A stretch of DNA of 64,000 nucleotides from Rhodosorus marinus CCMP1338 (taxonomy: Eukaryota; Plantae; Rhodophyta), in the NCBI GenBank assembly GCA_029953675.1, contig JAMWBK010000013.1, positions 806,001-870,000 of the forward strand. Direction: 5' to 3'. Positions within the stretch are counted from its first letter, which is position 1. Each line of letters opens with the position of its first letter. The translations under genes were made by a program, and so were the position numbers. Shown here one piece after another: positions 3,273 through 49,197 of this stretch. The notes under the pieces were generated by a model. That model ran no database searches. It saw only the letters and a program-made list of their open reading frames with translations, and had not been told where the DNA came from.

Positions 3273-3518
3273 TCACCAAGGCCCGACCTGTGTACCAGCC
3301 GGAACGAAGTCTACCGTCTGCACACCCTGAACGGCGTTTACCGTCTGCGGGACACCCTGAACGAACGATGCCGGCTCCGCACCCTGAACGAAGCCTTCTG
3401 CGTGTGCCTGAACCTGAACGCCTAACTGAACTTTCTCAGCAAGATGAATTTTCTGCATCAATGGAACCGCCATTGTGAACCCTAGCAGCGTCACAGGAGC
3501 TAAAGCACACAACCTCAT
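3273..3518 (-). CDS. Small secreted peptide-repeat protein, paralog 1 (81 aa; diversified ..VQG repeats)
   Basis: MRLCALAPVTLLGFTMAVPLMQKIHLAE is nearly identical to the N-terminus of the 35430-36119 ORF. It is followed by degenerate units AEGFVQG/AEPASFVQG/VPQTVNAVQG. The upstream ~500 bp is also homologous between the two genes. Confidence 0.65.
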   Translation of the reverse strand: MRLCALAPVTLLGFTMAVPLMQKIHLAEKVQLGVQVQAHAEGFVQGAEPASFVQGVPQTVNAVQGVQTVDFVPAGTQVGPW

Positions 3519-4365
3519 CAACAATGTTGTTCAATCCCCTCCCTCTGCACGAACTAGAAAACTTCTGCCGACTATCTACAAACTCGTTTACTCCTGCCCA
3601 AATTCAAATCTGAGCACGTATCACAATCTCTGGTTCTGGCAATGTACGACTTGTCACATATCCCTCATCCATCGCATACCAATCCTCAGGAGGCATCCCT
3701 ATGCTTATAACCCCAGGCCACGTATCCTCGCAAAGATCGTGGACCTTGCGGGCATTAAACGGTAGATGGGCTGAGCACAAATGTTTTTGTCCCTATGCCG
3801 TACCCAAATGAGTGTATTTACAATCAGAAAATTTATTTAGTCCGCGTGGAGGTTGCAGTCACTCAGGTCATTGCTATAAGCGGAACGGGGTACATTTCTC
3901 CATCAAGGAAGCATCGAACTGTTTCTTACTATGGTGTATGAACACTGCTTTGATGCTGTAAGCGCGTAAAGACCCCGCGCCTCCAGGGACAAAGCACAGT
4001 CCTTTTGCCCCCCGTTTTGTTTCTATTAAAATTATATAGGTGTTTCCTTCCTTTAAGAAATGTACCTCGTCCTGTCAATTGCAATGACCTCAGTGACTTC
4101 AACCTCCACGCTGCCTGATTGTACCATCAGTGCTCTCGCGGTTGAGCTTTTTAAGAAGGCGTATTTGATCCGTTTGGAAGTCTTCACTGTAATTTTCATA
4201 TTCGTTAATAATAAAGAGATTTTGGCCTTTGCAAAAGCGAATAATTTTCTAACGTAATTCAATGTCTATTAATAGACTTATCCGTTTTAGGGCCTGTTGT
4301 GTGTCGCAACAGAAATTTAGTGGATGGACGGATTTGCTTTAGTCCGACTAAATAAATTCATTCAG

Positions 4366-16640: not shown

Positions 16641-16650
16641 CTGACTCTCA

Positions 16651-16682
<32 letters not shown>

Positions 16683-20024: not shown

Positions 20025-23000
20025 ATCCATTTATTCAGAGGCTAACTACCCTGAGAAGCGAGAGACAAGACGCTGATGACGCGCGTCCACAAAGCATAGT
20101 TGGAGCACCACAGGGTCAAAGAAAGTTCCGTGAGCAGACTATCTAAACGCCCTGGGTCGTTGCGAAACAGAGCTCGCAGCCAGCGAGAACCTACACTATC
20201 TATCAAGCCAAAGCACTCAATAATGAGGGGGACGAACCGGTATGTCACCGCCGAATCGCGAAAGGTAGGGTTTGACATCGCTGCCGCGTACTGCGAATCT
20301 TTAACTTGCCGCATGGACCGAGCTGCAGCTCCTCGACGTCGAGCCGACGCAGGCAGGTACCTGGTCGTCTGAGGACAAGGGATGGAGAGGTCAATGTACT
20401 CACTGCGACGCGCATTGAGGTCAGTCACAACGAGTTCCGCCACCCGCTGTACCGTTGGGGCGTCACTCTCATCAGCAATTTCCGATGCCACTGCCAGAAG
20501 GACCTCATACTCCACTTCTCGGTCCGTACCGAGCGATTGAGTACGAAGGTAGCGGAAAAGCAAGTGATTGAGCCGCGCGCGCGTCTGGTCCGGGCCTCTT
20601 GAACCTCCGCACAAGACGCCAACAGATGCGCACCATAATCACCCCACGGCACATTGGCCCCGCACAATGCGCATCTAGAATCCTGCTCAACAGGCCAAGG
20701 GGGTTGCGGCATACCCACTTAAAGTCGTAAGCTTACACGAAGTTCGAGATCGGTAAGCGCCAACCGCGGATACGCAGGTATGACCGTGAAGAGACGGGAG
20801 CTGAGACCCCCCCCGAAACCGCGCAGGCGAGCTAAAATCGACGCCGAGCACGAAGGTAAACTCAGAAGGATGGCATACGAGTGCCGATGTATGTCCCACG
20901 AAGGGTTTTTTGTGGATTAACTCGGTCCTCGAAGGGGCCGGACCCAACCGGGAAACGCCCTCCTCTGGCCGTCTCAACGGCACAGCCACGGCGTCAACAT
21001 CCTCGGCGGTTTCTACACCATTTCCAACACACGGTGCTGCAGCAGAGACTCCCGAACGCTGGCCACCGAGGGAGTCAAGAACTGCCCCCCAGGAATCGCA
21101 ACGAGCCACTCGGCACGGCGGTACATTGTTGAAAAGGCGGCCTCCAGTTCCGCAAAAAACCCCCCGAGCCGTTGGGCGAGAGTCCCGTCCAGCCGCCCAA
21201 CCCGAAGTCCATTCAACAAACCACTCACATGCGGATCACACTCCGTAGACCATGTACTAAGCGCATTGGCCCACGAACTCACCACAGCCGCCGGCTGGAT
21301 CGCCGCGTAAGATCCCACAGCCAGCCCGCCCAACCGCACGGGCAACGCGATCTGCCGGTGAAGGACGTCCTTTTCTGCATCCCCGAAAACAGATAGCTCA
21401 GCATCCATCAGCGTGCCTAGCACGTCCCTCGCTCGTCGGTCTGCGCGGAGCGCCAGCCAAGACCCCCACTCGGAGGATAGCTGCCGCAAAAAATAGGTCA
21501 GCCTCTGGCACGCGCTGAACCGGAAGATGAGCAGAGCGGTCTGGAGGTACCCTTCTGGGAGACTGCACAGCTCAGCCAGGAGCTCATCATGATGACTCAG
21601 GAGCGCGGAGAGGCTGCGTTCAACAAATATCGGGGTGCCTACGGGGACACCGAACAGAAGGAAGCCCTCAGCTCGCCGAATTTCTCGGAACCTGGATGGA
21701 ACCGCGTCCGCGGTGCAGTGAGACCACCCCCCCCCCAGAAGTCGCACTTGGCATGGTTGATACGCAGCCCCACCAAGGAAGCCACCTCGCCGAGAAAATC
21801 ATAGGCCGGCACCAGATCGTCGGGAGTGCCAAGAAGCGTCACATCGTCATGGAAGGCGACTGCACGGACCCGCGGGAACTGATGTTTCAGCCGCAACAGC
21901 ACCAGTTGCAATCCACAGGCGTGCAGGAACGGCCCTAAGGGATCGCCCTGCTGCACACCCGTATGAGCCGCAAAGGTGTGGCTCTCGGCACCCAAGGTGA
22001 CAAATCGGGGCCCGTTCGGCGCTTCACCATATACGCGGCGTAAGAACGGGAAGCCAGAGGGGGAAAGCTGACGAACTACCTCAAGCGCGTGTGCTCGAGA
22101 CACACTGTTAAACGCGTTGGCGAAATCCACAGAAAGCGTGCCCAAGGGCTCATCGCGGAGACCGTCCAGCTGCAGGATACGCGTTATAAGTTTACAGCCA
22201 CCTGAATAGCCGACACCGACCTGGGTCAACTCAAAAAAAACCCTGGCCTCCCTAGTGAGCTGACGCGATAGAAAGCGGCTCGCCAGCTTCCGCAATGCTT
22301 CGCACATCCCGATTGGCCGAAGGGAAGGCGTCTGGTCGGAATGTCCAGGTTTGGGCAAGAGGACCAGTTGGGAGCGCGACAATAGTGCCCAGGCCTCTCC
22401 GCAAAAATCGTCCCCATTGACAAGACCCTCCAGTACCCGCGCAAGGGCGTCCAGCCCTTCTTCACCCAACCAGTGAAAAAGTTCGACCCGGAGTCCTGAG
22501 GGACCAGGTGCACGACCTTTCCGGGCGGACCGGAGCAGAGCCAGAACCTCATCCGGCCGAACAAGCAACCGACCCCTACCGCGTGAGGAATCGACAAAAG
22601 GATGTAAGACACGCTGGAACTCAGAGTTCCAACTCACGTCGCGCGCAGGGAACAACGCGGCGACTGGATCAGCCAGGTCAGTCCGATACGGCTCGACTGA
22701 AGCGCCTTGCGGGAGGATGGCCGCCCCACGCCGAATATCCCCCTGTGCCACTGCTGCCTTTTCCCGTACCTGCCTACGGGAACGAGAAGAAGGTGAAGTC
22801 CCGCACGAAGTGGATCTCGTTGTGACTGACCTCAATGCGCGTAGCAGTGAGTACATTGACCACTCCATCCCTTGTCCTCAGGCGACCAGGTACCTGCCTG
22901 CGTCGGCTCGACGTCGAGGAGCTGCAGCTCGGTCCATGCGGCAAGTTAAAGATTCGCAGTACGCGGCAGCGATGTCAAACCCTACCTTTCGCGATTCGAC

Positions 23001-24600
23001 AGTGACATACGGGTTCGTCCCCTCATTATTGAACGCTTTGGCTTGATAGATAGTGTAGGTTCTCGCTGGCTGCGAGCTCTGTTTCGCAACGACCCAGGGC
23101 GTTTAGATAGTCTGCTCACGGAGCTTTTTTTGACCCTGTGGCGCTCCAAATCTGTTTTGTTTGTGGACGCGCGTCATCAGCGTCTTGTCTCTCGCTTCTC
23201 AGGGTAGTTAGCCTCTGAATAAACGGATCAAGTGGAAGATGCGACACTAGCGAGGTATAAAGATTCTAAGAAAGCAAAGTCCCCCGCTAGAAAAGACTGA
23301 ACTTTGCGCTAATTGGACATGCATCGCGCCCCTGGGAGACCGTGAGCACTAGCCGAGGAAAAACAAACAAAAGCTTCCAAGCAAGTGCTGGTTGAGGATG
23401 GTCGGCCACCTCCATAAGCAGGAAATCCAAAAGAAACGCTTCTGCGCAAACGGTGAAGGAGAGAGACTGGGGGCGAACGAGCCCTCGCAAAGAGGGATAC
23501 CCCCAGAAGGAAAACGCCCAACAAAACCTTCGAACCAAGAGAAAAGGCGAGAACGCCAGTCCTCAAAGCTACCTGGGCTCGGAAAGAAAGCAGGAAGCTC
23601 GCAACGTTCCCTAAAAGACTAAGATATCCTGCTCCCTCACCATGGAGGAAGCGTCTACGAGATGCGAATCCGCAACGGAATCAGAAGAATTTCCCCCCGC
23701 AACTGGGGCCAAGAAGGGGCCTTGTGCGGAGGGGCACACAAAGAGGAGAGGGATGCATAGATAGCCCCTAAGGAGCCGGAGACCCTCCCCCGGACGCCAA
23801 AGGGCGAAGGGGTGCTCGGCTCAATGGCGAGCGGGTCCATCTCTGGATCGTAATTTACATCCATTGAGGGTAGTTCCCCCACGTCGTCACAAGGCTCCGC
23901 ACCGGCAGAAAGACGCCCAGCGGGAAACACCTGAGCAAAGTCAGGATGATTCTCCAAAAGCGAAGTTTCCGAGGCGAGGAAATCTTGGACCGCAGCATGG
24001 AGGAAACCCCTATTTGGGAGCCGATCTAGCAGGTTTTTCTGAACCCTTGAAAGCCGTTCAAAATGGGCCGAAACCGCCAAGGCAGAATGTCCTCTGCGCG
24101 AGCGCCAAGGAGATCCGAAGGGGCGAGGGATTCCGCAGAGAAACGATCAAAATCAAGCATTAAAGAAACACGGGCGCCTGTCAAAACCTTATTCGCTAAA
24201 ACAGGTCTCTGCGCAGGAGGCGCTTTCAACAAAGTAGATAGGATTTGGTGCGCAGTATCTGTCACCAAGAAGCAAGCATGGGGTCCCGAAAAATCAACGT
24301 AGAGAAAATCGCGGGGCGACGCGCCGAGACACGAGGCCATCGTGTCACGGAAATCGCGAACAGGAATGCGGGCCCATTAGCGCGAGGAGAGCTGGGGCCG
24401 CACGTTGGCCATCACAACCCAACGGAGAGGAGATATGGTCCGTTTAACAGAGTCAACGGCAGGCTCAGGAGGGAATGTACGTACCAGGGCCTCCGCGCGG
24501 GCCTCGACGGACCCACGACGGAGCACTTAGGAGTAGGAAGGCCGCACCGGGCGGGTAGCGGCGGCAGGGGGCACAGGACCAGACACAGAAGAGTCGGCCC
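20025..24600 (-). mobile_element. Family B long copy (partial ORF1 + disrupted RT-RLE ORF2), interrupted by an opposite-strand B insertion at 22815-23229
   Basis: ORF1 block RDFLYVDFSGPHACFLV. RT motifs GRAPGPSG, VDFANAFNSVSR, GVQQGDPLGP, AFHDD and QIALPVRLGGL. RLE domain and B terminus at ~20025. Frameshifts present. Confidence 0.88.
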
Positions 24601-24811
24601 CCTCATTGTTGAGGCCTTTGGCTTGATAGATAGTGTAGGTTCTCTCTGGCTGCGAGCCCTGTTTCGCAACGACCCAGGGCGTTTAGATAGTCTGCTCACG
24701 GAGCTTTCTTTGACCCTGTAGCGCTCCAATTCTGTTTTGTTTGTGGACGCGCGTCATCAGCGTCTTGTCTCTCGCTTCTCAGGGTAGTTAGCCGCTGAAT
24801 AAATGGATCTA

Positions 24812-27690
24812 AGGCAAAGATCCTGAAGACGCTGTTCCGGGGTGCAGGGGGTGCGTATGCCCCTCGGGACCATCTGCGACGGGCAACAGCTTTGCTTGCT
24901 AACGAAACCCAACCACGAGCCGGCACACCTGCGTCTCCGGCCGATCGGCATGGTCGAGAGTCTACGGAAGCTCGGCGGGAGGTGGCTATGCAAGCGCCTA
25001 CGCCAGCGAGTCACCGCTTTTATGGCGCCTTGGCAGGTGGGGGTGGGATTTTCCAGGGGTTGCGAACTGAGCACTCATGCGATCGAGCTCGAGCGAGCCA
25101 GTAGGCCGGACTGGGGCGTTTTGGTGGTTGACTTCCGCAACGCGTTCAAAAGCGTCTCGCGGACGCCTGCCTTGGAGGTGATTCGAAGGGCATTCCCGGA
25201 GGCGTGGCCGTTCCTATCCGGTATTTACGGAGTAGGGAGCCTCCCTTACTTGACGACGCAGGGCTCTGTTTTCGCAGCACGTACTGGCGTTCAACAGGGT
25301 GATCCTTGTGGGCCTGTACTTTACGCCTATGCCTTGCAGCTGGTGCTCCAGCTCCGTTTATTCAGAGGCTAGCTACCCTGAGAAGCGAGAGACAAGACGC
25401 TGATGACGCGCGTCCACAAACAAAGCAGAATTGGAGCGCCACAGGGTCAAAGAAGGCTCCGTGAGCAGACTATCCAAACGCCCTCAGTCGTTGCGAAACA
25501 GAGCTCGCAGCCAGCGAGAACCTACACTGTCTATCAAGCCAAAGCACTCAATAATGAAGGGGACGAACCGGTATGTCACCGCCTAATCGCGAAAGGTAGG
25601 GTTTGACATCGCTGCCGCGTACTGCGAATCTTTCACTTGCCGCATGGACCGAGCTGCAGCTCCTCGACGTTGAGCCGACGCAGGCAGGTACCTGGTGGCC
25701 TGGAGACAAGGGATGGGGAGGTCAATGTACTCACTGCGACGCGCATTGAGGTCAGTCACAACGAGATCCGCCACCCGCTGTACCGCAGGGGCGTCACTCT
25801 CATCAGCAATTTCCAGCGACTGGCGGCTGAGGTGCCGGAGCTTCGCATCTGTGCTTACCATGACGACGTGGCGTTGCTGGGCACCCCTGAGCACTTGGCT
25901 CGGGGATTGACCCAAATCAAAGGAATCGCACATGGAGTAGGTCTAACCGTGGAACCCGAAAAATGCCGTTTTCTCGGCCCGCGGGCTCCCTGCAACCTAG
26001 TCTCTGAGCCTTTGGTGAACGTCCGGGGCTCGAGCACCATGGCGTCGGTTTGGGGAATGACAACTTTGTCCAAGACTCTTGCGAACGAGTTTTAGCACGC
26101 CATAAGCAGCTCAACGACGCTGCTTTTGAGAGCGCCTACCGGACAGCATGCTCCAATCGGCTTGCCTGCTCTCCCGCTTTTGTGCCGGCCCCCGACTGAA
26201 TTACTGAATGCGACGCCTTCCCTCGCACTGGGGCTCCTGAATGTCAGCCAAGGCGGACGAGGCGATGCTGAAGCACTGGGGAACGCTTTTGGATGAACCC
26301 CTGGATGTGGAAGCGGCTCCTGACGGGGACCTAATTCGTGGCCAGATTGCCCTACCTTTACGATTAGGCGGATTTGGAGTCGCCGACCGGTGGACTCGTA
26401 CGCTCGCCTGCGGCGGTCGCTCCTCCGCATCGCACCCTGGTGAGTTTTCGGATGCGAAGTGCTTGCCTTTTGGCTAGAGCACTGACTAGCGAAGACCCCA
26501 TGGCCCTTCCGCCACCGCTTTTGAGTATCTACGATGCTCTGCAACAGGCGTTAAGTAGAAGATCCGTTTATTCAGAAACGGATGAGTAAGTGCAACGCCG
26601 TGCCGGACGAGAGCCGATCCAGATTTCGCTCCTGGAAGGAGCTGTTATGGGGACGAACTGAGGCACTCGAAGACTCTCCCATCGACAGAGTACTCGCGGA
26701 CGAGGGGAAAGCTAGCCCCGGGTCTCCGGTTGCCGATTACCCTGGTCTGAGCCGATTGTGGAGCTCGCGCACTGATGTGATTCAACATAGCCTCACCTGT
26801 GGCCAACAAAGTGCCGCTCACACAATCTTGCTCAACTCTCCCCTCACTCCGTCTACCACCGCTCGCCTCCGCGGCATGGGAGGCCATCTATCACATTTGT
26901 GGTTAACGACGATGATGATCCGTTTCGACCCTGCCGCCATCACTGGGTCACCGCCTAGATGCCTTCCAGTTTAGCTCTGCCGTGCGGATCTACCTGGGTT
27001 TGCCACAAGCTCCGTGGCACTCTAATCGGCCGTCTTTCTGTCAGGGATGTGAGAGTCGGAACGATGCTTGTGGTTACCATTTCTTAGGTTCACGCGGACT
27101 GTTGAGAGGTCTTCGTACGAGGCGTCACACTCGCTTCAAGTACATTCTCAGTGAATATTTGACTCGGGTAGGGCATACGGTTGAGGTGGAATCGGAACTA
27201 CCCAGATCGGTCTGATAGGGCACCGCCCCGCTGTATCGCAGATCTCCTCGTCTCCGATGCTGCCGCCAGACGCTCAGCATATGCTGACCTCGCGATTACA
27301 TGCCCTGTGGCAAGCGCCCCTCTCACGGCTGCCGCCCGCCGCCGGGGAGCAGCTGCTTCGGCCCTTCGCCGCGTGAAGGAACGACGGTATGCTGAGAGTG
27401 TGGCCAGTCTGCCTCGCGCTGAAGGTCGCTGCCACCGGTTCCAGCGTTTCATTGTGGAAAGCTTTGGTCACGTGGAGAAGGCGGGTTTGGAGTGGTTTCG
27501 GAAATGTTTCACTGAGCATCCTGTTGAATACTTGGAACTTTTGCGGCGTTTAAGTGTCTCTCTGTGGCGATATTCGAGCAGCATGCTTGCCGAGGCGCGC
27601 CATCGGTGCCTGGGTTTGCACGCTTCCCTACCTAGTTCTTAGTTCCTTTTCACGGTTTGCGTAGCGCTTTAGGCTATGCCAATAAAGCCA
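24812..27690 (+). mobile_element. Family A long 5'-truncated copy (disrupted RT-RLE) carrying nested family B insertions
   Basis: LRPIG, QVGVG..GCE, VDFRNAFKSVSR, GVQQGDPCGP, AYHDD, QIALPLRLGGFG, CQGC, RHTRF and HRCLGLHASLPSS*. B inserts at 25353-25811, 26557-26586 and ~26908-26925. Confidence 0.88.
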
Positions 27691-31400: not shown

Positions 31401-31673
31401 ATTTCTGCTATCCGGCGCGGGATGTCTATTAATAGACATTGAATTACGGTAGAAAAATATTGGTATTTGCGCAAGTGACAAACCTCTTTATTATTAACGA
31501 ATATGAAAGTCTCCGCGAAGGTTTCCAAACGGCCAACCGCGCCGCAGCAAAAAACTTAAACTGCGAGCACTGGTTACAATCAGGAGCGGTACGCGGTACG
31601 CAGCGTGGAGGTTGCAGTCACTCAGGTCATTGCTATTGGCGGAACGAACGAACAAGGTACATTTCAGTATGAA

Positions 31674-34258
31674 TGAATGGTTTAATCGGAGGCTGAAAAA
31701 AAACCCCGAGGGGAAAAAAAGACTAAGCGCGGCGAAGTACTCGCGCCTCCAACATCAAAGCGGCATTCATGCGCCACAGCAGGAAACTTAAGCGGGTAAA
31801 CAACGATTGAAGACGGTCAGGGCGTTCGCGGAACAACTCCCGAAGCCAGCGAGAACCAACAGAGTCCATGAACCCAAAGCACTCAATGATCAGGGGTACC
31901 AAGCGATGTGCTAGTGCCGAAGCACGAACACCAGGGGAAGACAAAGCCCCCGCGTATTTGATCTTTTTGCGGCGTCTCATGCTGGCGGCGGCAGATCCAC
32001 GGCGCTCCCCCGCAGCCGGGAGATAACGACTAGCTTGAGGGTTAGGAACAGCAAGATCAACGTATGTGGTACGGCGGCTGTCGTCACAGGTGATCACCAG
32101 GTCGGCTACACGGCGTTCATCATTTTGAAAGTCCGCGACGGGTAAAGGTTTCTCACGTTCGATTTCCAGACCGGCTTGCCGGACTATAGGCCGAAGTTCC
32201 CGGTATAACAGGTTCAAGATCCGTGTATGGCGGCGGGTTCGAGCACCTTTCACCGCCGGGCAACTAGCGAGCAGGTGGGCGCCAAAATCTGCGTTGTCTT
32301 CAGTCTGAGAGCAGAGAGGGCACGACGAACCCATCTCGTACGGCCAAGGGGGCTGATGTAAGCCGAGGTATAAGCGCAGTGAAGTACGCACTTCGAAATC
32401 CGACAGTGTGAGTGGCGGAAAGGCTGGTACGGTCATGAGCCACTGAGAGCTAATAACCCCTCCAAGACTACGTAGGCGGGCGCGAGCGCGAGAAGATGAG
32501 ACCATCTGCGCGAGGAGTCGGCCATATGCAGCACGGTGCAAAGTCCCAAGAAAGGATATTTTGCAGCGCATCCGTGCGTGCTTGAGCTCGGCTCCCAGCG
32601 CGCTGGGAATCATCAGGAGGATCAACTGGAACTTCTTCTTCTGCGGCAACCACTGGGTCAATCTCCCCTAGAACAGGTTCAGGCGCAGGACGAATCCCCG
32701 GGGCGGAGCCTCGAGAGCGGTCAAATACAGCTCGCCAGTCAGGAAGACGGGGTTGAACGGTTTCGGGGAGACTAGTACAGGAATTCAGGGCGGTTTGGAG
32801 CTCCAGAAACAAGTCTTGGGCGCTTTCCGGTACGCTGGGAAGCAAGACACCCCGCGAGAGGCTCGCCATCAAATTGCGGAACTTCGAGATACCCAAGCTG
32901 CTCAAAGTGGGAAGTGCGGTTCCCCAGGCCCCTACTGCGGCTGCAGGTTGGACCACAACACGATTGCAGAGGCCCAGTCCCCCAATCGCAATGGGAGGCC
33001 TACCTGGGCGCGCACAACATCACAGGTGGGTCGCGGCAGAGCGCTCAGCTCTTCATCGAGAAAATACCCCAGGTCACGGAAACTTTCAGCATCCGCACGA
33101 GTGGCCAACCACCGGCCCCAATGAGTTGGAAGTGAGCGAAGCCAATAGGTTAACCGCTGACTGCAACAATACCGAAACAGCAACAACGAGCACTGGAGAA
33201 AGCCCGGAGGTAGCCGACGAAGCTCTGCAACCAGCTGTCTGTGCTTACCGAGGAGCTGCAGCAACTCGCCTTCAACGAAGGACGGCGACCCGTAGGGGAT
33301 GCCTAAGTGGACAAAACCATCCGGTCTCCAAATATCCTGGAACGACGCAGGTACATGCTGCTCTTGTGCAGCTACACCTCCCCAGTAGAACGATTTGTGA
33401 TGATTAACCTCCAGGTCAACCCGCGAAGCCAAGGAGCGGAGACGATCATAAGCGAGTGCTAGAGTATCAGGGGGCCCCAGGAGGCACACGTCGTCGTGGT
33501 ATGCAACCGTACGAACCTGCGGGAATTCGGAGCGAAGACAAAGCAAGACGAGTTGTAGTCCACAGGCATGTAGGAAAGGGGACAAGGGATCACCCTGTTG
33601 TAGCCCTGTGCGCGCCGCAAACGTGTGTGAGGAAGCGCCAAGGGTGTCATAGGTAGCCCCACGACCAAGCGGAGAATAAAGTCTACTAACAAAGGGAAAG
33701 CCTACAGGGAAGACTTCGCGCACCACGTGCATGAGAGCCGGACGAGAGACGCGGTTGAACGCATTGGTAAAATCTACAGAGAGGAGCCCAGAATCTGGGG
33801 AGTACGCCATTTCCGAACGGAGTAAAACAGACAACAACTCACAGCCACCACGATAGCCCACGCCTAACTGCACGTGCCCAAAGAAACGGCGGGATTCGGG
33901 AACCAGGATTTTCACTAACCATCGCGCCGCCAATTTGCGGACCACCTCAACCAGGCCAATAGGGCGAATAGCAGGGCTCGAGGCCGTGTGGCCGGGCTTC
34001 GAAAGCAGACACAACTGCGAACGCCCGACCAAGAACCACGCACACTCACACAGGGGATCACCATTCACGAGCGCTTCGACCACCCACGCCAACGCCTTCA
34101 AACCTTCATCACTTAAGAAACGGAGATATTCCACCCGCAGCCCCGAGGGCCCTGGGGAACGGCCCTTCGGAGCATCATGAACCAACTCACGCACCGCCTC
34201 CAGATTGACCGCTAACCGCGCACTGGGATGTGGCGCGGCGCGGTACTCTTCGAACACT
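31674..34258 (-). mobile_element. Family C 5'-truncated copy (~2.6 kb) with 7-bp TSD GTATGAA
   Basis: Nearly identical to 6818-9400. RT AYHDD and RLE present, with small frameshifts. GTATGAA at 31667-31673 and 34259-34265. (TTCA)n tail. Confidence 0.92.
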
Positions 34259-34544
34259 GTATGAAGGTATTTTCAATAGAAAAAAAACGAGGGGAAAAAA
34301 AGACTATGCACGGCAAAGATCGCGGACCTCCAGCATCAAAGCAGTGTTCATACGCCATAGTAAGAAACAAGTCGCTGCTTCCTTGATGGAGAACTATTCC
34401 CCGTTCCGACAATAGCAATGACCTGAGTGACTGCAACCTCCACGCTGACTAAATGAATTTTCCGATTGGTAGTAGACTCATTTGGGTGGGGTATAAGGCA
34501 CGCCGCATGGGGGCCTGCCTGATCCTACCTGGGAAAGTACTTGA

Positions 34545-34815
34545 ATGAAGATAGAAAATTACTTTCTATTCTGTTGTGACCGGACTTAAAACGCCAATCA
34601 ATGTTGATTGGAGTAGAAGGTTTTCAAGATTTTCATGGAAGTTTCATTGGTTGTTGGTTGTCCCAATGAAGATAGAAAATTACTTATTATTCTGTTGTAG
34701 GTTGACCTGACTTAAAACACCAATCAATGTTGATTGGAGTAGAAGGTTTTCAAAATTTTCATGGAAGTTTCATTGGTTGTTGGGATAACCAACAACCAAT
34801 GAAACGTTTCCATGC
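34545..34815. repeat. Two tandem ~125-bp units ending in a hairpin
   Basis: gaagatagaaaattact..ccaatcaatgttgattgg..tttcatggaagtttcattggttgttgg occurs twice, followed by a 17-bp inverted repeat at 34767-34805. Confidence 0.75.
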
Positions 34816-35429
34816 GGTATAGGGAAAAAAACATTGGTCCTCAGCCATCTTACCGATGTACATTTCTGCAAGGAAAGAAACACTTGCGTAAACTTCAATA
34901 GAAAACAAAACGAACGCATAAAAACAGACTCCGCTTTTATGCTGGAGGTGCGTAAAGATCGTTCGCCTTCCAGCATCAAAGCAGTGTTCATACGCCAAAG
35001 TAAGAAACCAGTCGGTGCTAACTTGATGGAGAAATAAGCCCGTTCCGACAATAGCAATGACCTGAGTGAGTGCAACCTCCACGCTGCCTAAATGAATTTT
35101 CTGATTGTAAATAGACTCATTTGGGTGGGATATAGGGCACGCCTCTTGGCGGCATAGGGACAAAAAACATTGGTCCTCAGCCATCTTACCGTTCAGTACC
35201 TGCTCACAAGGTCCACGATCTTTGCGAGGATACGCGGCCTGGGGTTATAAGTAAGCCGATGCTTCCTGAGGATTGGGATGCGTTGGAGGAGGGATATGTG
35301 ACAAGTCGTACATTGCCAGAGCAGGGATTGTGATAAGCGCTCAGATCTGAATTTGGGTAAACGAGTTTGTAGGCAGTTGGCAGAAATTTGGGAAAGTTGT
35401 CTAGTTCGTGAGGAGGGAGCAGATTGAAT

Positions 35430-36119
35430 ATGATGAAGTTGTGTAGTTTAATTTTTGTCACCCTGTTAGGGTTCACAATGGCGGTTCCCTTGATGCAGAA
35501 AATTCATCTTGCGGAGCCGGCAGCCTTCGTTACGGGTGCGGAACCGGCAGCCTTCGTTACGGGTGCGGAGCCAGCAGCCTTCGTTACGGGTGCGGAACCG
35601 GCAGCCTTCGTTACCGGTGCGGAACCGGCAGCCTTCGTTACCGGTGCGGAACCGGCAGCCTTCGTTACCGGTGCGGAACCGGCAGCCTTCGTTACGGGTG
35701 CGGAACCGGCAGCCTTCGTTACCGGTGCGGAGCCGGCAGCCTTCGTTACCGGTGCGGAGCCGGCAGCCTTCGTTACCGGTGCGGAGCCGGCAGCCTTCGT
35801 TACCGGTGCGGAACCGGCAGCCTTCGTTACCGGTGCGGAACCGGCAGCCTTCGTTACCGGTGCGGAGCCGGCAGCCTTCGTTACCGGTGCGGAGCCGGCA
35901 GCCTTCGTTACCGGTGCGGAGCCGGCAGCCTTCGTTACCGGTGCGGAACCGGCAGCCTTCGTTACCGGTGCGGAACCGGCAGCCTTCGTTACGGGTGCGG
36001 AGCCGGCAGCCTCCGTTACGGGTGCGGAACCGGCAGCCTTCGTTACCGGTGCGGAACCGGCAGCCTTCGTTACGGGTGCGGAGCCAGCAGCCTTCGTTAC
36101 GGGTGCGGAGGTAAAGTAG
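35430..36119 (+). CDS. Secreted tandem-repeat peptide precursor-like protein, paralog 2: signal/leader + (AEPAAFVTG)x22 + AEVK
   Basis: Hydrophobic N-terminus MMKLCSLIFVTLLGFTMA shared with the paralog at 3273-3518. The frame is open through the whole array. A TATA-like TTATAA lies ~190 nt upstream in both paralogs. Confidence 0.75.
   Translation: MMKLCSLIFVTLLGFTMAVPLMQKIHLAEPAAFVTGAEPAAFVTGAEPAAFVTGAEPAAFVTGAEPAAFVTGAEPAAFVTGAEPAAFVTGAEPAAFVTGAEPAAFVTGAEPAAFVTGAEPAAFVTGAEPAAFVTGAEPAAFVTGAEPAAFVTGAEPAAFVTGAEPAAFVTGAEPAAFVTGAEPAAFVTGAEPAASVTGAEPAAFVTGAEPAAFVTGAEPAAFVTGAEVK
35511..36104 (+). repeat. 27-bp minisatellite, 22 units (GCGGARCCRGCAGCCTTCGTTACSGGT)
   Basis: Read directly: 594 bp = 22 x 27, no spacers. 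Confidence 0.97.
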
Positions 36120-36329
36120 TGACCCTGAGGAGGAGCCAGCATCCCACGTTCAGGCTGAGTATCCTGCAGCTGGGGTTGAATGAAAATTCCCACACAGAAA
36201 CAATTCGCTGTAATGTTGGATACCCGAGATCGTATGCTCAATAACTTGAACTAGAGTGAATTTTTTAACCAACTGCGCCCGCTTGCTGCAGCCACGTTGC
36301 GCTAGTCTAAGCATATTAAACAAATGCTT

Positions 36330-38280
36330 TCAGTCTAATCCCAGACAAGCGTAACCCTATGTTTTTCCTCGCATAGTCATCGAATTAGTGTTGGGTTACA
36401 TTAGGCAGCACCAGCTTGTGTACTTCGCCGATTGAAGGAACAACGATATTCTGAGAGAATGGCCAGTCTCCCACGTGCAGAGGGCCGGTCTCACAGGTTC
36501 CAGCCTTTTGTTGTGGAGAACTATGGGCATCTAGAAAAGTCGAGCTTGGAATGGCTGCGGAAATGTCTTACTGACCACCCGGTTGAATTTATGGGAGTCC
36601 TATGCCGGTTAAGTGTCGCTCTCTGGCGATATTCTAGAAGTATGCTCGCCGAGGTGCGCCATCGCCGCGTCATCGCCGCCTGAGTTTGCATGCTTTTCTC
36701 CGTAGTTTCTAGTTCCTTCTCACGCCCTGCGTAAACGCTTCAAGCTATGCTAGTAAATCCATCCACGCTTCCCTACCTAGTTGTTAATTCCTTTTCACGC
36801 TTTGCTTAGCGCTTTAGGCTATACTAATAAAACCACCAGTAAATCCATCCAGCAAAGAATGCAGTTCTGTTTGTCTGGGGTAACACCGACCCACTTTTTA
36901 ATTAATTAAGGCTTTATTGTTAGCAAACGTGTACAATCGAAGCGACTCCCTTCACCGACGAAGAGTTTGTCAGACTTGCTGATGCAAATGCCATCCTAGC
37001 ACGTGGCCCTGGAACGTGTTGATGACCAACAAAATGGGCGTGCAGACTCTAGGATGGAAGCTAACCTGATGAATCAAGACACACGCGCGTATACCATGCA
37101 GTGACTGAGGGTTAACCAAGTCTGATGCCTATATAAGCCAAGATCGTTTTGTCATCCTAGTGAGGAAGACTCTGGGAGACATAACAATATAAAAGAAACA
37201 GGCACATGAACACCTAATTTGTCAACATTTATTAGCAAATTGATTAGCGGCTGACCTGACTGTAGAAGGTATTGATCGAGCACGAGTCTGGTTTGCAGCC
37301 TGGTATGGGAGCAGGACCTGGTTGCCAGACATGCCCACAACTGGCACGAGGAAGCTGTAGCGACGAGAAACGATGTGTAGCATTCGGATGCTCCTTGGGC
37401 TCCCTTTACCTGGGCTTCGCTGGGAGTTCACGCAAGATGTTTAAAAAACCGTCCCAGAAACCACTGTAGCTAGACATTGAGTGTTGGATGCTCTATATAG
37501 GGTTGTGCCAAGAGGGTCGGGTTTTTTGCTGTTTACGACCCGGAAGTGGGTAAAATTCCCTGTGTAGCCCAGGCAAAGGGAGTCCTAGGAGCATTCGAAT
37601 ACTACACATCATTTCTCATCCCTACAGCTTCCTCGTGCCAGTTGTGGGCAACTCTGGCAACTAGGCCGTGCTCCCATACTAGGCTGCAAAACCAGACTTG
37701 TGCTCGATCAATACCTTCTACCGTCGGATCAGCGACTAGTTCCTCAAAGCGTGTCGGTGTAATCCCAGACAAACAGAACTGCATTCTTTACTGGATGGAT
37801 TTACTAGCATAGTTTGGAGCGTTACGCAGGGCGTGAGAGGGAACTAGAAACTAGGGAGAAAAGCGTGCAAACTCAGGCGGCGATGACGCGGCGATGGCGC
37901 GCTTCGGCGAGCATGCTGATAGAATATCGCCAGAGAGCGACACTTAACCGGCATAGGACTCTTATAAATTCAATCAACACATTCAGTAACCAACAGGTCA
38001 GTAAGACATTTCCGCAGCAATGCCAAGCGGGACTTTTCTGGATGCCCAAAGCTTTCCACAATAATAGGCTGGAACCTGTGAGAACGGTCAGTGCAGTGGC
38101 ACAGGGGAGACTGGCCATATGCTCTCAGCATGCAGTCTTTCCTTCAATCGGCGAAGTACACAAACTGTTGCTGCCTAATGGAAACCAGCACTAATTCGAT
38201 CATTGCGCAAGCAGAAGTATGGAACTCCATACTTCTGCTCTAGCCCAGACAAACGTAACTACGTTTGTCTGGGCTAGACT
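36330..38280. repeat. ~2-kb imperfect foldback: arms 36330-36900 vs 37745-38280 (each with a family A 3' end) and 37240-37430 vs 37556-37740
   Basis: Arms are reverse complements, for example aaatccatccagcaaagaatgcagttctgtttgtctggg vs cccagacaaacagaactgcattctttactggatggattt. Confidence 0.8.
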
Positions 38281-38688: not shown

Positions 38689-41600
38689 CTACAGTTTCTC
38701 CTTGCACGCACACACGGTCTCGCTTTCCGTGACAAACGCGAATTCCTTGGTGCGCACGACCGTAGGATATTGAGGTGAGTTGCGAAGCGACGGAACCAGG
38801 CGAGCACGTGGTAGAAGAGTGCGCAATGCGGGTGCGGGAAGACTTACCCCAAGGCCTGTACTCATAGGACATCGGTCACCCAGAACCCTATCAGTGTGGT
38901 TGCAAGTTCCGGGGCCGCGACAAACCACGTTGTAGCATCGATTTGCTTCAAAACCGGTCTCACAAGTACACTTGCTTGGATCGCTCACATCCTCAACGAC
39001 CGTCTGCATATAAACAAAGAGGAAAATGAGAATGTCAGAAGGCGGCACCAACACCGGAGCGCACAAACCTCTCTTCCAAACGCCTCCATTGCCTTCTTAT
39101 TCACACTTACTCCAAGACGTGCTCTGTCGTGACAAGTATCACCAGGATTCGCATATGCGGCGATAGTAGTACCTGACGGACCACCGGAGCCCTCGCTCAG
39201 TTTGAATCGATAACTGCATTGCTGCGTCGCGCATGTGCATTCGCCCGGATTGTCACCCGGAGTGAGAAGCTGGTTTCGAAAACGAGCGGTTGATGAAACA
39301 TTAGTCAGCGGAGATGTCTCCTACTTCCCCCTGGTCTAAAGAGCATCGGTTTTGCATACTCCTGTGCTATCCCCATCGGTCTTTGGCACACAGATGTCTC
39401 CAATTTTGCCTTGCTGTGGCGAGCATCCCGCAATTCCAGCCGGACAATCAATGTTGACACACTTTTGCGTGCATTTACAATTGCCCCGCTGGTCCACAGT
39501 GATGACCTTCGCATCCGGAAGAAGACAGAAAACACAAAACCGTACGTGAGCTTTTGAGGCTTTGGCCTTTCCTTGAACCTTCACTGTCAAGCATACAACC
39601 AAACAAAAAAAAAAAAGACTCACCCCGTTTCCGTTATCGCAGGGTTCTCCAAACTCGCCCTCAAAAGTCTCACAGCCATCTCCTTCGCAGCTTGATAGAG
39701 TGCACTTATCAAGCCGGCAGCGACAGGAAATGAAATCTCCCGGATGGGATTCAACCACCACCTGTATTCCGAATACAGGAACGTTTCCTGAAAGCTCAGT
39801 CTAGATCTTTTTCTCGGTTCTCTTATCGCCGGAGATCGCATGTATCGAGGTACTCACGCCTGCCAACGGACCGACAGCACATCCATAACCGGGAATGCCA
39901 TCAAGAGCACCATTAGTTGTTTTCTGATTGCAAGAATTTTCGCACCTGCATAATCCTCCACCGCTTGCTCGCTTAAGAGTCTTCCAAAACGGTAAAACAA
40001 ACCAAGCAGGAAAGAAAGGGGAGGTTAAGTAGGTCATGACCTTCGTCCATTCCTCAAGAAAGCGCGACCATCATCTAACGTACCAGGGTCTGAAGGTAGT
40101 CGCTAATACACTCTTCCCCAACAGGAATACATCCAGCATCGCGATGGTAACATTGTGAGCTCGGACAGTCCTCGACGGACTGACAGAAACACACTCCTTC
40201 ATCCCCAACGACCCCCGTAGCGACCTAACCCAAGCCAATTAAGGAAATAGAAAAGCAGGAGGACAAGGCAGCGGTCAGTAGATGTGAAACGGATTCGACT
40301 GCAACCCTAGGCACAACACGTGTTTGGCCAAGTGAACTGACCCCTTCAATCGAGCCCTCTTGAAGGGTGCACCTTTCGCCAGTGTAAGTGTCACAGTTTC
40401 TCGTGCACTCGGGACTCTGCAGGGTGCACTGAATCGCGCAAGCACACGCGCCGGAATGCTTGTCCTGGACCAGGTTCTATGCAAAGAGACAAACATTGCT
40501 CCTCCATAAGACGCAAGAAACATCCCCTCGCCCCTCAACATGTTGAACATCTTTTCGGGAGGCCCTACCCCGCTTCCAAAATCTTCAGTGCAACTATCTC
40601 CAGCGCTTTGGCCGGTGAACTTACAGCCAAGGACTCCCGGCGGACACTGACAAGTTCTTGTTTGTTGACATTCACAATCATACTCTCCCACAGGTTCTGC
40701 GAGCGGCAAGAGCACCTGTGGCAAAGGTGGAAGCGACCTCGGTTCAACTCTCAAAACAATCACGCTCGAGAGAAAGACCGTGGCAAGATCCCTACTCCGG
40801 ACGCATCCCAGTTTGTACAGGAGTTCCTATAGGGCTCATCCTGTATAGCCCTCGGATAACTACGACTATCATCAAGTGTGGAGTTCCGCTCGTAGTTGCA
40901 TTGATTATTGATTTCAAGGGCCGGTGCACAGTAGCAGATCCCTTCGTCCTTCTCAAGGAGAACCTGCAGAAGGGAAACAAACATATCATTTTTGTCCTTC
41001 CCTTAGCAAATTGTGTCAAGAGCAGTTGCCATGCTTCCGCGGGAACTTCTTTACCCCTTCAACAGATCCATCAACACCCACCACTGTGGAGCTACACGCT
41101 TGACCGCCATATCCTTTGGCTACACACTCCGGACAACCCAAGGGGTCAGGAATGTACTCGCACGGTGCAGTACATGAGCACTAGGGGGTCCGCATTCAAA
41201 GCAAAGAGAAAGAGTGAGGATACGTGGGCCAGTTTCTCAAGCTCGTGTTTGGGGAGCTGAGCGGCTTACGAATCTCATGCCTGGTCGGTAGGCCCCGTCG
41301 GGAAGCGCCAGCACGACCTGGAAGTTTGGAGACACGTCCAGGGACGAATTGGTGAGATTGCCTTATCGCAGACACTTCTTTGGAACAAATTCTTCTGCAA
41401 TTTGTTTTCATATCTTGCTCTTACCCCAGGGGCTCCCGCCGCGCTCGTACAGACCTGTCCCGCTATCGAGTTGTAGACTTCGATATCCGTGGCAAGGCTA
41501 TCTGAGACCACCGTGCACGTCAGCCCACCCAACTCCTCACAGCTACATTGATTAGTGGTCGTCCCGAGTACACGTTTCACCGTCCCGAACTCGCCACACG

Positions 41601-42596
41601 CATCTCCTGGGTACAGCTCTTCGCAGTCTGGCTGTCCAGCTAACCCGCAAGAGTCGAAGGTACACTGCGCAGGTTCCTCGCACGGTTGGCATACACAGTC
41701 GGCAGTGACTTTAGAACCTTTTTGGAGGGTCTAATCACGAAACGAGAACGAGGTTAGGATACTTTCCCTGAAACCAACACATCCGTGCGAGTTCCCAAAC
41801 TCACTCCAAGGTCTCCGAAATGATCACATGATTCGTTGATCCGCGCATTCCTCAAGGTGCAGTCGATCGGTGCTACCAAAGACCCCACATGGGGACAGGT
41901 AGAGACGATGCAGGTTCCTCCAGAGATACCAGTCTCGTCCAATGGGCACCCGCTGCAGGTGAAATCCATCTCACAGATCCTTTGCTTTGTGCCCGCCCTT
42001 CGTTTGCAAAAGGCCGTAACGCTGGTACCACCTGAGGGATGGACAGTCATTTGCTTTGGGACATTGCCAGCGTAAGTCGTCGGACCGACTACAGCGGTCC
42101 ACATGACAATGATCCCGTCACGGCAACAGTCGCGATCGATCTCATCGAGCGCCAATACGAGGGTATGCTTTTCGACCTCCTTCGGGAATGATTCGCTCGT
42201 AGCGTACGCTTCATCAAAGTCTGTCGGGATTTCATCTTCCGTGGCATAAACGCCGCCGCGGACTTGCGTGAATCCAAAACCAATATCATCAATTTTAAAC
42301 CTAAGTTCAACCTTGTCCCCGTCTTCATTCAGCGCTACGCAGACCCGTCCCATCCGCCTTGGGACGCCGGATAGGTCGAATCCGGCAATGCGCTTTCGCC
42401 TCAACAGAGGCCGACATTTTTTAGTACTCGTCGAGTCCACTCCAAGCCTCACTAGACCCGCCCTTGACAGGGATGCTGCACAAGATACCCCATCCGTCTC
42501 CCTTACCGAAGCCTTCAACGATACAGGAGAAGCATAGCATAACCCCACAAACAGCGAAACCACAACGCCTATCCGCAGATTCCTCATCCCCATCAT
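38689..42596 (-). CDS. Large multi-exon secreted Cys-rich repeat protein (signal peptide, ~200-aa N-terminal domain, then repeated C-x(5-6)-C..GD-x-C..CxC modules); exon structure only partly resolved
   Basis: MRNLRIGVVVSLFVGLCYA signal. Successive ORF pieces CPHVGSLVAPIDC..ESC, CPPGVLGCKFTGQSAGDSC, CPAGIAGCSPQQGKIGDIC and CRGPGTCNHTDRVLGDRC are separated by GT-AG introns. Confidence 0.7.
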
Positions 42597-46510: not shown

Positions 46511-47007
46511 ATCCATTAGTCTGGCGTCAGGACTCCTTTTTCTGCCACTCGTGGACAGAACAACCAAATCAAGTTCAATCCTGCCCTAAATAGTCCAAGG
46601 TACTAAAACTAGAATAGTGGAATGATCCAGTACGAACGCACTAATTATAGCTCCACTGTCAGCAAGAGGCGAGCAGAGGTTGGTATGTAAACCGTCTCGA
46701 AGGGATTCCGCTGGAGACTTGTAAGAAAAACGGTCGAAACTAAACCTTAGCAAGATCTAGACCATTCCGAAGAGGGCCCAACAGGGGCATACGCGCCCTA
46801 CCATAATCCTGGATATAGTTGACACTTCAGTCGCTTGATTGAGTTTGAATGAAGGAAGGCAAGAAACGAGCAGGAACAACTTGATGCAGGTTGCGAGTAT
46901 CCATTTTCCGGGTTTCTTTGAAGGCAGAGTGGATGGATAAATCTGGGTTTGTAGTGGGCCTCCATGGTGGTGTGCCTGGAGCAAGGAGGAGCCTTAAAGT
47001 AGCAAAG

Positions 47008-48198
47008 ATGTCACTGTCTCCAATGCGCGGGGGTTGCCGGGTGGGTGTGTTGGACTTGGAGATGCCAAGGGTAAAAGACCGGAGTGCCTTTCTTGCTCGA
47101 GTGTTCTATCCAACCGATGAGGAGGTTGGGAATCCTGTTCAGTGGATTCCTTGGGGTAGAGTCATCGCCAAATACTTTGCGGCGTGCTTTGTGACATTAC
47201 CCAACTGGGCAACTGCTGTACTGGGCTGGATTTTCGCTCAGACGGTGGGGAAAAGGGTGGTTCCAGACACATATTATGGAGCGAGGGTTATGAAACCAAA
47301 GAAAAAGTTTCCCACGGTCGTGCATTGCCACGGTTTGATTGCGGATCGATTTACTTATACGGCGATGTGTCGCAGCATTGCTTCTGACGGAAACATCGTG
47401 TTCGCGTTAGAGCATCGCGATGGATCTGCCCCTATTACCAAAGTTACGGATGAAAGAACTGCTGAGAAAACTGAAATTGAATACAGGAGGTTACCGAAAG
47501 ATAGCACAGGGGAATTTGCGAATAAGCTCAGCAGGCAGATGCTGAGCGTACGTGTTCAAGAGGTCGAGGCGGTCGTTGACTACATAAAGGAGCTCGCCGT
47601 TGGAGTAGAACCGCTCAATCTTCTTGATCCAGAAGGGAACTATCGGGACTTGCTGAGTTCGTTTGCTGGGAAGATCGATCCAAACAAACCCAGCGTGGTC
47701 GGTCACTCTTTTGGGGCAACGACGGCGCTTCTGTGTTGTAGCAAGCATCCCAAGTTGTACAGTAGCTGCGTCTTGCAGGACCCTTGGATGGATCCATTGC
47801 AAAACAGTCTCAAGGCTGAGGATGGTCCCGAAGTGCGGATTCCTTTCGTAGCGGTTTTGAACGAGCTAACAGTCTGGCCCGAGAATCATGAAACGGTGAA
47901 CAAATTCGCCCGACGAGCGCCGAACGGGGAGTTTCTGACGCTGAAGAAAGCATCCCATCACGTTCAATCAGACATCCCCGTTATGATTGGCCCTCACATA
48001 GCGAAGTTTCTGAAGCTCAGCCAGAACGGCGAGGACCGGGAGCCGCTGTACGAATCAATAGCTGTCTCCCTAAAGTTTCTCCGGAAGCACTTCCACCGTG
48101 AAGGACCCGTTGTTCTGGAATCGGAACGTCTGATGCATATTGAACCTTACAAGGTCGAGCAAAAAACGAGAAATTCGCCCCAGGTGCAGTTCATCTGA
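47008..48198 (+). CDS. PAF-acetylhydrolase-family (group VII phospholipase A2-like) alpha/beta hydrolase, copy 1, 396 aa, intronless
   Basis: FPTVVHCHGL..Y..C..IASDGNIVFALEHRDGSA, nucleophile GHSFG, QDPWM and HHVQSD match the PAF-AH Ser/Asp/His motif arrangement. Start taken at MSLSP. Confidence 0.85.
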   Translation: MSLSPMRGGCRVGVLDLEMPRVKDRSAFLARVFYPTDEEVGNPVQWIPWGRVIAKYFAACFVTLPNWATAVLGWIFAQTVGKRVVPDTYYGARVMKPKKKFPTVVHCHGLIADRFTYTAMCRSIASDGNIVFALEHRDGSAPITKVTDERTAEKTEIEYRRLPKDSTGEFANKLSRQMLSVRVQEVEAVVDYIKELAVGVEPLNLLDPEGNYRDLLSSFAGKIDPNKPSVVGHSFGATTALLCCSKHPKLYSSCVLQDPWMDPLQNSLKAEDGPEVRIPFVAVLNELTVWPENHETVNKFARRAPNGEFLTLKKASHHVQSDIPVMIGPHIAKFLKLSQNGEDREPLYESIAVSLKFLRKHFHREGPVVLESERLMHIEPYKVEQKTRNSPQVQFI

Positions 48199-48819: not shown

Positions 48820-49025
48820 AGTTGCAGAACGGCGAGGACCGGGAGCCTCTATACGATTCAATGGCTGTCCCCCTACTGTTTCTCCGGAAGCGCTTCCACC
48901 GCGAAGGACTCGTTTGCTCTGGAATCGGGAAGTCTGAAGCATATTGAACCTTACAAGGTCGAGAAAACAAGGACAAAATCGTCCCACATGCAGGTCATCC
49001 GAAGTCTCTTTTTCCCGTACTCCTA
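48820..49025 (+). pseudogene. Duplicated 3' fragment of the PAF-AH-family gene
   Basis: cagaacggcgaggaccgggagcc..KHIEPYKVEK.. matches the 3' ends of both full copies; frame disrupted. Confidence 0.8.
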
Positions 49026-49197
49026 ATTCCGATCGCCTTCCAAGGACGAGCCCTGTTGACCACAAGCCACCAACCCGATACCCGATCAAATCGTCTCCTC
49101 TAGCTGGATCATGTGATAGAGAGATTGCGCTCTTCTCCCCTGCAAATTATAAGCAAGTACAGTGTTGTCCTGGGCCGTCCAATAAACGCTATAAATA

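Follow-up and report, generated by a model that had tools for sequence, protein, structure and literature searches.

The 64,000-nucleotide stretch of the Rhodosorus marinus CCMP1338 genome analysed here (contig JAMWBK010000013.1, positions 806,001 to 870,000 of the forward strand; hereafter the window) carries an open reading frame (ORF) composed of a signal-like N-terminus, a short leader and a long tandem array of nine-residue units. The ORF lies on the plus strand, opens with ATG ATG AAG at 35430 and closes with TAG at 36117-36119, and its product of 229 aa reads MMKLCSLIFVTLLGFTMAVPLMQKIHL followed by 22 copies of AEPAAFVTG and the tail AEVK. Tandem Repeats Finder reports a period of 27 at 35510-36109, with 22.2 copies, 96% matches, 0 indels and a score of 1053. 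Cutting from position 35511 yields 22 units of six sequence types, which vary at only 4 of the 27 unit positions (6, 9, 17 and 24). Three of these are third codon positions with silent alternatives, namely GAA/GAG at position 6 (12:10), CCG/CCA at position 9 (20:2) and ACC/ACG at position 24 (14:8); the fourth, position 17, carries a TTC>TCC change (F>S) that is a singleton confined to unit 19. Along the array the types run a b c d d d b d e e e d d e e e d b f d b c, an order that shows block duplication, as unequal exchange would give. The CCMP1338 assembly was built from Oxford Nanopore Technologies long reads with 6-kb size selection and from Illumina reads (PMC10250338), so the 600-bp array was plausibly spanned by single reads. 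RNA-seq data exist for this strain (PMC10250338).

The N-terminus resembles a signal peptide for the endoplasmic reticulum (ER) and should route the protein to the secretory pathway. Specifically, it comprises a basic n-region (MMK), a hydrophobic core of 11 residues (LCSLIFVTLLG, mean Kyte-Doolittle hydropathy 2.48) and a predicted cleavage site between TMA and VP, after residue 18, that agrees with the -3/-1 rule; this check was crude and rule-based, and is distinct from a SignalP run. The leader VPLMQKIHL follows directly. The original prediction for this locus had described the 22-copy array of nine-residue units, the signal-like N-terminus, this leader and the lack of dibasic Kex2 sites, and every one of these points is borne out: the count of KR, RR, KK and RK pairs in the protein is 0. 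The coordinates are collected in Table 1.

Table 1. Features of the array gene, its paralogue copy2 and the reverse-transcriptase ORFs, in window coordinates.
Feature	Position	Strand	Basis
Upstream region (putative promoter/5' untranslated region), common to copy2	34854..35429	+	blastn and alignment
Signal-peptide coding part MMKLCSLIFVTLLGFTMA (aa 1-18), predicted cleavage between TMA and VP	35430..35483	+	hydrophobicity, -3/-1 rule
Leader VPLMQKIHL (aa 19-27)	35484..35510	+	conserved in family
Array, 22 x 27 bp = (AEPAAFVTG)22, unit 19 = AEPAASVTG	35511..36104	+	Tandem Repeats Finder and unit cutting
Tail AEVK and TAG stop	36105..36119	+	ORF translation
copy2: (L)MRLCALAPVTLLGFTMAVPLMQKIHLAEKVQLGVQVQAHAEGFVQGAEPASFVQGVPQTVNAVQGVQTVDFVPAGTQVGPW, then stop	3273..3521	-	homology to 5' part of array gene
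copy2 upstream region, homologous to 34854-35429	3522..4069	-	blastn and alignment
RVT_1 ORFs	8708-11417, 21639-22868, 32932-34257		Pfam

The array gene has a paralogue, copy2, within the same window. It is an 82-codon ORF that starts at the ATG at 3518, one codon inside a listed ORF with a TTG start, and reads MRLCALAPVTLLGFTMAVPLMQKIHLAEKVQLGVQVQAHAEGFVQGAEPASFVQGVPQTVNAVQGVQTVDFVPAGTQVGPW. Its leader is identical to that of the array gene, its units are between 9 and 11 aa long, and a lone unit, GCGGAGCCGGCATCGTTCGTTCAGGGT (AEPASFVQG), agrees with that of the array in 23 of 27 nt. Because copy2 retains this unit homologue in single copy, the array is taken as the amplification of one unit from an older degenerate repeat region. 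The similarity extends into the upstream DNA, where 34854-35516 and 4069-3435 (reverse) share 78.5% identity over 679 nt (blastn). Upstream of the array gene, 34329-34514 resembles 34969-35153, and an exact 30-nt repeat lies at 34826 and 35162; the proximal segment 34969-35191 is thus present a second time farther upstream, as 34329-34514 plus 34826-34855, and a 126-bp x 1.9 tandem repeat is inserted between the duplicates (34544-34783). In GenBank, copy2 appears solely as the last exon of NDN08_000219 (P0002, 359 aa), and this exon is identical to 3273-3521 on the minus strand. The gene model itself (window 3273-9664, minus strand; locus L001, 10001-16392) is chimeric: a reverse-transcriptase element supplies the upstream exons, and the last one begins within the copy2 signal peptide, so that the true ORF is masked.

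A homology search with the array protein returned two records, the R. marinus protein NDN08_000219 and an MMETSP transcript (P0001) that presumably comes from a Rhodosorus strain. P0001 holds a complete ORF of 135 aa, whose N-terminus, MMRSCILVFVTLVGFTMAVPLMEKIHL, has the signal peptide and leader of the family, the latter with 8 of 9 residues identical (VPLMEKIHL). Four units follow (LDTVDSVEG AKLAAHVQA AETVDLVEG AEPAASVVS), then an irregular insert of 19 aa, YYDPYYNTLSGESKVSVED, four further units (AEQAARVQA AMTVDLVEG AETVDLVEG AEPAVLVEG) and a Cys-rich tail, GGKLGGCKGTAECHDCCP. Since P0001 is an MMETSP transcript, at least one family member is transcribed. Among the array gene, copy2 and P0001, 19 of the first 27 positions are invariant, all three carry VPLM[QE]KIHL, and A1, E2, V7 and G9 recur as conserved unit positions; a Met start together with the common architecture is found in two of the three. 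We therefore define the family by the N-terminus ...VTL[LV]GFTMA-VPLM[QE]KIHL, with cleavage predicted at the dash, and by units of about 9 aa of the form A-E-x-[AV]-x-x-V-x-G. The original prediction had proposed, as a test, a search for relatives that share the leader and vary in their repeats, and such a family exists in copy2 (3273-3521, minus strand) and P0001.

The searches made brought up no relatives beyond these three members. Exact look-up of the array protein and P0001 in public assemblies gave no record, and an exhaustive phmmer search with P0001 against 1.84 billion representatives returned only P0001 itself. A leader profile searched against 5.8 billion proteins gave four candidates that share 5-mers, none of which scored E <= 10; this null is unreliable. 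The same search missed P0001 and P0002 despite their near-exact leaders, probably through a filter or short-profile effect. No relatives were found with the leader DNA and leader peptide patterns in JGI metagenome contigs, or in prokaryotic genomes with the DNA pattern of the unit, and these empty scans make bacterial contamination or transfer unlikely. As judged from these sequence comparisons, the family is a very small, taxonomically restricted orphan group of putatively secreted repeat proteins.

The 3' end of the ORF has features of its own. The last codons, GCG GAG/GTAAAG TAG, contain at 36107-36115 a GAG/GTAAAG string that resembles a splice donor. The next 44 nt (36110-36153) open with GT and close with TTCAG, and are followed by GCTGAGTATCCTGCAGCTGGGGTTGAATGA (AEYPAAGVE, then a stop), a degenerate repeat unit that would join the array frame if the 44 nt were removed (region 36105-36183). 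This segment is either a very short intron or a sign that a relic unit was severed by an insertion. A downstream exon with a Cys-rich tail as in P0001 (GCKGTAECHDCCP) was considered and rejected, as no C..C..CC motif lies near the array in any of the six frames.

We next consider what the array says about strand and frame. Three of the six frames are open across it, because a 27-bp unit without stops keeps any such frame open; ORF length alone is therefore no evidence of a gene. The original prediction had also pointed to the silent variation between units. The three silent sites and the single F>S change stand, and as evidence for coding or strand they are weak alone: the probability that at least 3 of 4 variable sites are synonymous is 0.07, and in the antisense frame, (APVTKAAGS)n, the same three sites are silent too, with only one K>E change. 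Strand is not identified by this argument. The frequency pattern, with silent variants in many units and the amino-acid change as a singleton, lies in the direction expected under purifying selection, on very few events.

The evidence that singles out a frame comes from outside the array. In the plus frame alone, an ATG and a hydrophobic N-terminus are continuous with the leader and the array. Over codons 9-28 (VTLLGFTMAVPLMQKIHLAE), which run from the last part of the signal peptide through the leader to the second codon of unit 1, the array gene and copy2 differ at five nucleotides, of which five are synonymous and none non-synonymous. With 23% of possible changes synonymous, the chance of such a result is about 7e-4. 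The adjacent non-coding DNA of the two copies is about 78-85% identical, and the first half of the signal peptide differs by four amino-acid changes. The 5:0 pattern is a clear signature of selection on the plus reading frame, with purifying selection acting on the leader. This evidence also bears on a very different explanation, which we regard as highly improbable, that the minus-strand ORF at 35504-36241 is the coding one or that the array is a non-coding satellite within a transposable element. The minus frame is indeed open for 245 codons with the same silent sites, and transposon fragments flank the locus. Yet this ORF has neither a signal peptide nor relatives and stops on leaving the array, at 35504, within the leader; the homologue of the array unit lies in the plus-frame ORF of copy2, and P0001 uses the same frame. 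That the gene unit is a fixed part of the neighbouring retroelement is rejected, as its position and orientation relative to that element differ between the two loci, the reverse transcriptase being divergent at the array and upstream in tandem at copy2. Additionally, Rfam gave no matches in the whole window.

Together, these observations suggest that the array ORF is probably a genuine but unannotated protein-coding gene of R. marinus. For its product we favour, with about even confidence, an acidic structural or matrix repeat protein that is secreted and whose array has recently expanded as a coding minisatellite. The 18 N-terminal residues would direct the protein into the ER, where cleavage between TMA and VP would release a very acidic polypeptide of about 20 kDa made of VPLMQKIHL and 22 nonapeptides. 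This predicted mature product has 211 aa, an isoelectric point of 4.05 and a net charge of -21, with 23 Glu against 2 Lys; it contains 32% Ala and about 10-11% each of Val, Pro, Glu, Phe, Thr and Gly, with a grand average of hydropathy of +0.67. Within each unit a hydrophobic, beta-prone AAFV segment would alternate with a Thr-Gly-Ala-Glu-Pro turn or spacer. Composition reportedly separates elastomers from amyloids, by a rule from Rauscher and colleagues; the value of 2P+G, 0.32, would place the protein on the beta- or aggregation-prone rather than the elastomeric side, with Glu and Pro as regular breakers.

The polypeptide would then stay whole and serve as a periodic polymer of the mucilaginous wall or of the extracellular matrix, rather than as a source of excised peptides, a role suggested by its architecture, by the degenerate, structural-type periodicity of the paralogues and by the lack of a processing motif. 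Stylonematophyceae have mucilaginous cell walls (PMC10250338). The array itself most likely arose recently, when unequal recombination or replication slippage multiplied a single ancestral unit in a gene with degenerate repeats, as shown by the near-identical units, the block pattern and the single-copy unit homologue in copy2. Array length would be set by recombination, and copy number probably varies between strains.

Several findings weigh against this reading. GenBank has no gene over 35430-36119 on either strand (calls examined around NDN08_000225, window 28689-52596); its calls in that interval are a PAF-AH gene at 46933-48198 (+), P0003 at 38689-42596 (-) and a 163-aa reverse-transcriptase-fragment model at 31723-34358 (-). 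An array-repeat protein is absent from a collection of 5.8 billion proteins. Expression of the array copy is presumed. The locus sits within a mosaic of transposon fragments and palindromes, and the units are so alike that the open frame could merely reflect a young array. Finally, the wall or matrix role is an inference.

Structure prediction belongs among these points. AlphaFold2 (AF2) run without an alignment gave the array protein a beta-solenoid with one four-residue strand (AFVT) per unit, at a pLDDT of 75 and a pTM of 0.69, in only two of five models; the others score 35-41. Foldseek against the PDB returned nothing significant, with a best E of 0.31, and its top rows (E >= 0.3) are RTX beta-rolls, pentapeptide-repeat proteins and pectate-lyase-type helices. 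As a control with imperfect repeats, P0001 was predicted to be disordered except for its signal peptide (pLDDT 48). AF2 is known to yield confident but unrealistic models for perfect repeats (Pratt et al. 2025, PMC11795689). We therefore rejected the beta-solenoid as structural evidence: it is probably a perfect-repeat artefact, which removes structural support for the favoured reading. The repeat region may be extended or disordered.

Much of the contrary evidence would also fit a silent or decaying paralogue, in which a 27-bp minisatellite lately expanded in a duplicated family gene amid transposon-rich DNA and makes no functional product. The ORF would survive there only because units of 27 bp, divisible by three, preserve the frame, contain no stop and form an array too young to have been damaged. 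Such an origin would agree with the three open frames and the four variable sites, with the missing GenBank gene and the absence of the product from protein collections that include transcriptome-derived ones, and with the abrupt AEVK tail, 44 nt beyond which lies the degenerate out-of-frame unit. It would also agree with the surroundings, which comprise reverse-transcriptase fragments, duplicated upstream segments and, directly downstream, a large imperfect palindrome of about 1.85 kb (36363-38216) formed by 3' fragments of a retroelement ORF. Nevertheless we consider it rather unlikely. The copy keeps an intact start codon, signal peptide and leader, and the comparison of its leader with that of copy2, at five synonymous and no non-synonymous differences, argues that selection acted on one or both lineages once they had been duplicated. 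Within the array the silent variants are spread over 10, 8 and 2 of the 22 units, and the lone amino-acid change occurs in one unit. Gene prediction is commonly preceded by masking of tandem repeats, and transcript assemblies from short reads collapse them, which makes the missing annotation weak evidence.

The original prediction had placed the locus among candidate precursors of ribosomally synthesized and post-translationally modified peptides, with a structural or wall protein as the alternative. As a multi-core precursor, the protein would be recognised through its leader and cut by a protease other than Kex2 at a conserved unit boundary, for example after Pro or between V-x-G and A-E, to release 22 nonapeptides that might be cyclised or trimmed. 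A signal peptide, a leader under purifying selection and variable repeats form the pattern of many ribosomal peptide and toxin precursors, the units are identical at the protein level, and in P0001 the boundary V-[EQ]-[GA]-A-E is better conserved than the four residues in between. Surface and matrix repeat proteins just as typically combine a conserved N-terminus with variable repeats.

Against a peptide precursor, the array protein lacks dibasic sites as well as Asn, Asp and Arg, and has only 3 Lys in 229 aa. The Pfam scan of the window, which covered 46 ORFs of at least 150 aa outside the array and from which shorter or spliced genes could escape, found no prolyl oligopeptidase, UstYa/DUF3328, BURP or other peptidase, cyclase or tailoring family; the only families were RVT_1, Cullin, PAF-AH, Aladin and UQ_con. 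Peptidase_S9 matches are sub-threshold (E 6e-4; 19.6-19.8 bits against a cut-off of 22.6) and fall on two lipase-type hydrolases of the PAF-AH family. The paralogue repeats are irregular, with units of 9-11 aa and the insert YYDPYYNTLSGESKVSVED in P0001, and we know of no precedent for a tandem-core peptide precursor in red algae. Degenerate repeats of 9-11 aa with periodic conserved positions suit a structural repeat better than identical excised cores. We thus found nothing specific for excised peptides, and hold such a precursor to be quite unlikely; the more particular version, in which the leader recruits an unknown protease or cyclase, neither Kex2 nor an asparaginyl endopeptidase, that cuts between V-x-G and A-E or after Pro and yields 22 nonapeptides and mixed peptides from the paralogues, is more doubtful still. 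The structural or wall protein emerges as the better-supported of the two proposals, through the periodic conservation and the variable unit length in the paralogues.

The surroundings of the gene are rich in retroelement remains. A retroelement segment of 2.6 kb is duplicated at 96.9% identity (6802-9405 and 31665-34259); one copy lies near each repeat-family member, in a different relative orientation. Related pieces of 200-500 bp occur at 27690, 28689, 30514, 49700, 51250 and 53600. The arms of the downstream palindrome total about 400 nt with 81-93% complementarity; among its retroelement fragments is an ORF at 36432-36683 that reads in part ...FQPFVVENYGHLEKSSLEWL.... Farther away, 13650-25820 is a 12-kb block of segments of 60-1000 bp with 91-97% mutual identity, in both orientations and with RVT_1 ORFs embedded, for example at 21639-22868; it represents either a cluster of nested or rearranged retroelements or a higher-order repeat. 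NDN08_000225 (P0003, 355 aa; 38689-42596, minus strand), some 2.6 kb away from the array, is a multi-exon gene with a signal-like N-terminus and many Cys-rich segments; it matches only itself among 5.8 billion proteins and so encodes another orphan protein, which is probably secreted. Two genes of the PAF-acetylhydrolase family (PF03403; 46668-48229 and 54213-55775, plus strand) share 88% DNA identity, and a third, partial copy of the 3' end at 48825-49139 marks local tandem duplication. Housekeeping genes flank the repeat-rich stretch, namely a ubiquitin-conjugating enzyme (1880-2368), an Aladin-type WD40 protein (57846-59323) and a cullin (61520-63321), all on the plus strand and all with long uninterrupted exons.

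The locus thus reveals no new kind of system, but a family of orphan genes and a gap in the annotation of an alga that has been little studied. For the Stylonematophyceae, whose only chromosome-level genome this is, it brings an unannotated gene together with a small orphan family of putatively secreted repeat proteins, and it exposes NDN08_000219 as a chimeric model that hides a second family member. If the product is a component of the mucilaginous wall, it would join the very short list of candidate matrix proteins known from unicellular red algae, and its variable length would make it a convenient marker between strains. Were it a peptide precursor, it would represent the first tandem-core precursor family in Rhodophyta and extend multi-core ribosomal peptides to red algae; no finding here favours that outcome. 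Two methodological points follow: the coding strand cannot be told from silent variation between units, and a confident AF2 solenoid on a perfect repeat is not structural evidence.

Comparison with known systems places the array protein away from established peptide precursors. With the fungal Kex2-processed (KEP) or dikaritin precursors, for example UstA, it shares a signal peptide, as judged by the rule-based check, and many short tandem units; it differs in having no KR or RR between units, no UstYa/DUF3328 or tyrosinase gene was found in the window scan, and the host is a red alga, not a fungus. The precursors of yeast alpha-factor and honeybee apidaecin have in common with it a secreted, multi-copy form and the Glu-Pro and Ala-containing dipeptides of each unit. 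Precursors of that type need a dibasic endoproteolytic cut before trimming by dipeptidyl aminopeptidase, whereas the array protein lacks the dibasic site and its unit is not a run of consecutive X-Ala/X-Pro pairs. MSDIN or cycloamanide precursors are about 35 aa long and have no signal peptide, one Pro-flanked core and a dedicated prolyl oligopeptidase; the array protein has 229 aa, a signal peptide and 22 units, and Pfam found no S9A prolyl oligopeptidase in the window. Unlike the cyclotides and PawS-derived peptides or orbitides processed by asparaginyl endopeptidase, it offers no Asn or Asp at a core end.

Structural and wall proteins offer closer, though partial, likenesses. The RTX beta-roll (GGxGxDxUx) shares the nine-residue periodicity, a strand per unit in the AF2 model and the top Foldseek rows, but AEPAAFVTG has no GG, no Asp and no Ca-binding turn, those rows have E >= 0.3, and the model is probably an artefact. 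A Pfam match to the Suprabasin GxHH repeat (PF21009; hmmscan, 35 bits against a cut-off of 31) was rejected as an identity: the only His lies in the leader, no unit has GxHH, and the match is a compositional one of an Ala/Gly/Val-rich periodic sequence. With the arabinogalactan-proteins (AGPs) and hydroxyproline-rich glycoproteins of plants and green algae the array protein shares a signal peptide, one Pro-Ala per unit and a content of Pro, Ala, Ser and Thr (PAST) of 53.6% of the mature protein. The screening of AGPs by Schultz in 2002 and Showalter in 2010 reportedly used a compositional cut-off of 50% PAST, which this value exceeds. In the array, however, Pro follows Glu (Glu-Pro-Ala) rather than Ala, Ser, Thr or Val, clustered glycomotifs (Ala-Pro, Ser-Pro or Thr-Pro) are lacking, Phe and Val are high, and the AEVK tail has neither a glycosylphosphatidylinositol (GPI) signal nor a hydrophobic C-terminus. 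AGPs and extensins have been described as Viridiplantae classes (PMC3797821).

The array protein shares more with the yeast FLO/ALS adhesins and the variable-number tandem-repeat (VNTR) domains of mucins, despite having no sequence kinship with them, a unit of 9 aa that is hydrophobic and acidic rather than Ser/Thr-rich, and neither a GPI signal nor a globular domain. The likeness lies in the signal peptide, the long in-frame run of near-identical units, homogenisation by recombination, the conserved N-terminus with repeats that vary among paralogues, and the presumed extracellular site. FLO/ALS adhesins and mucin VNTR proteins are cell-surface or matrix proteins with intragenic coding minisatellites, and by this analogy it is proteins of that kind that the array protein would seem most like.

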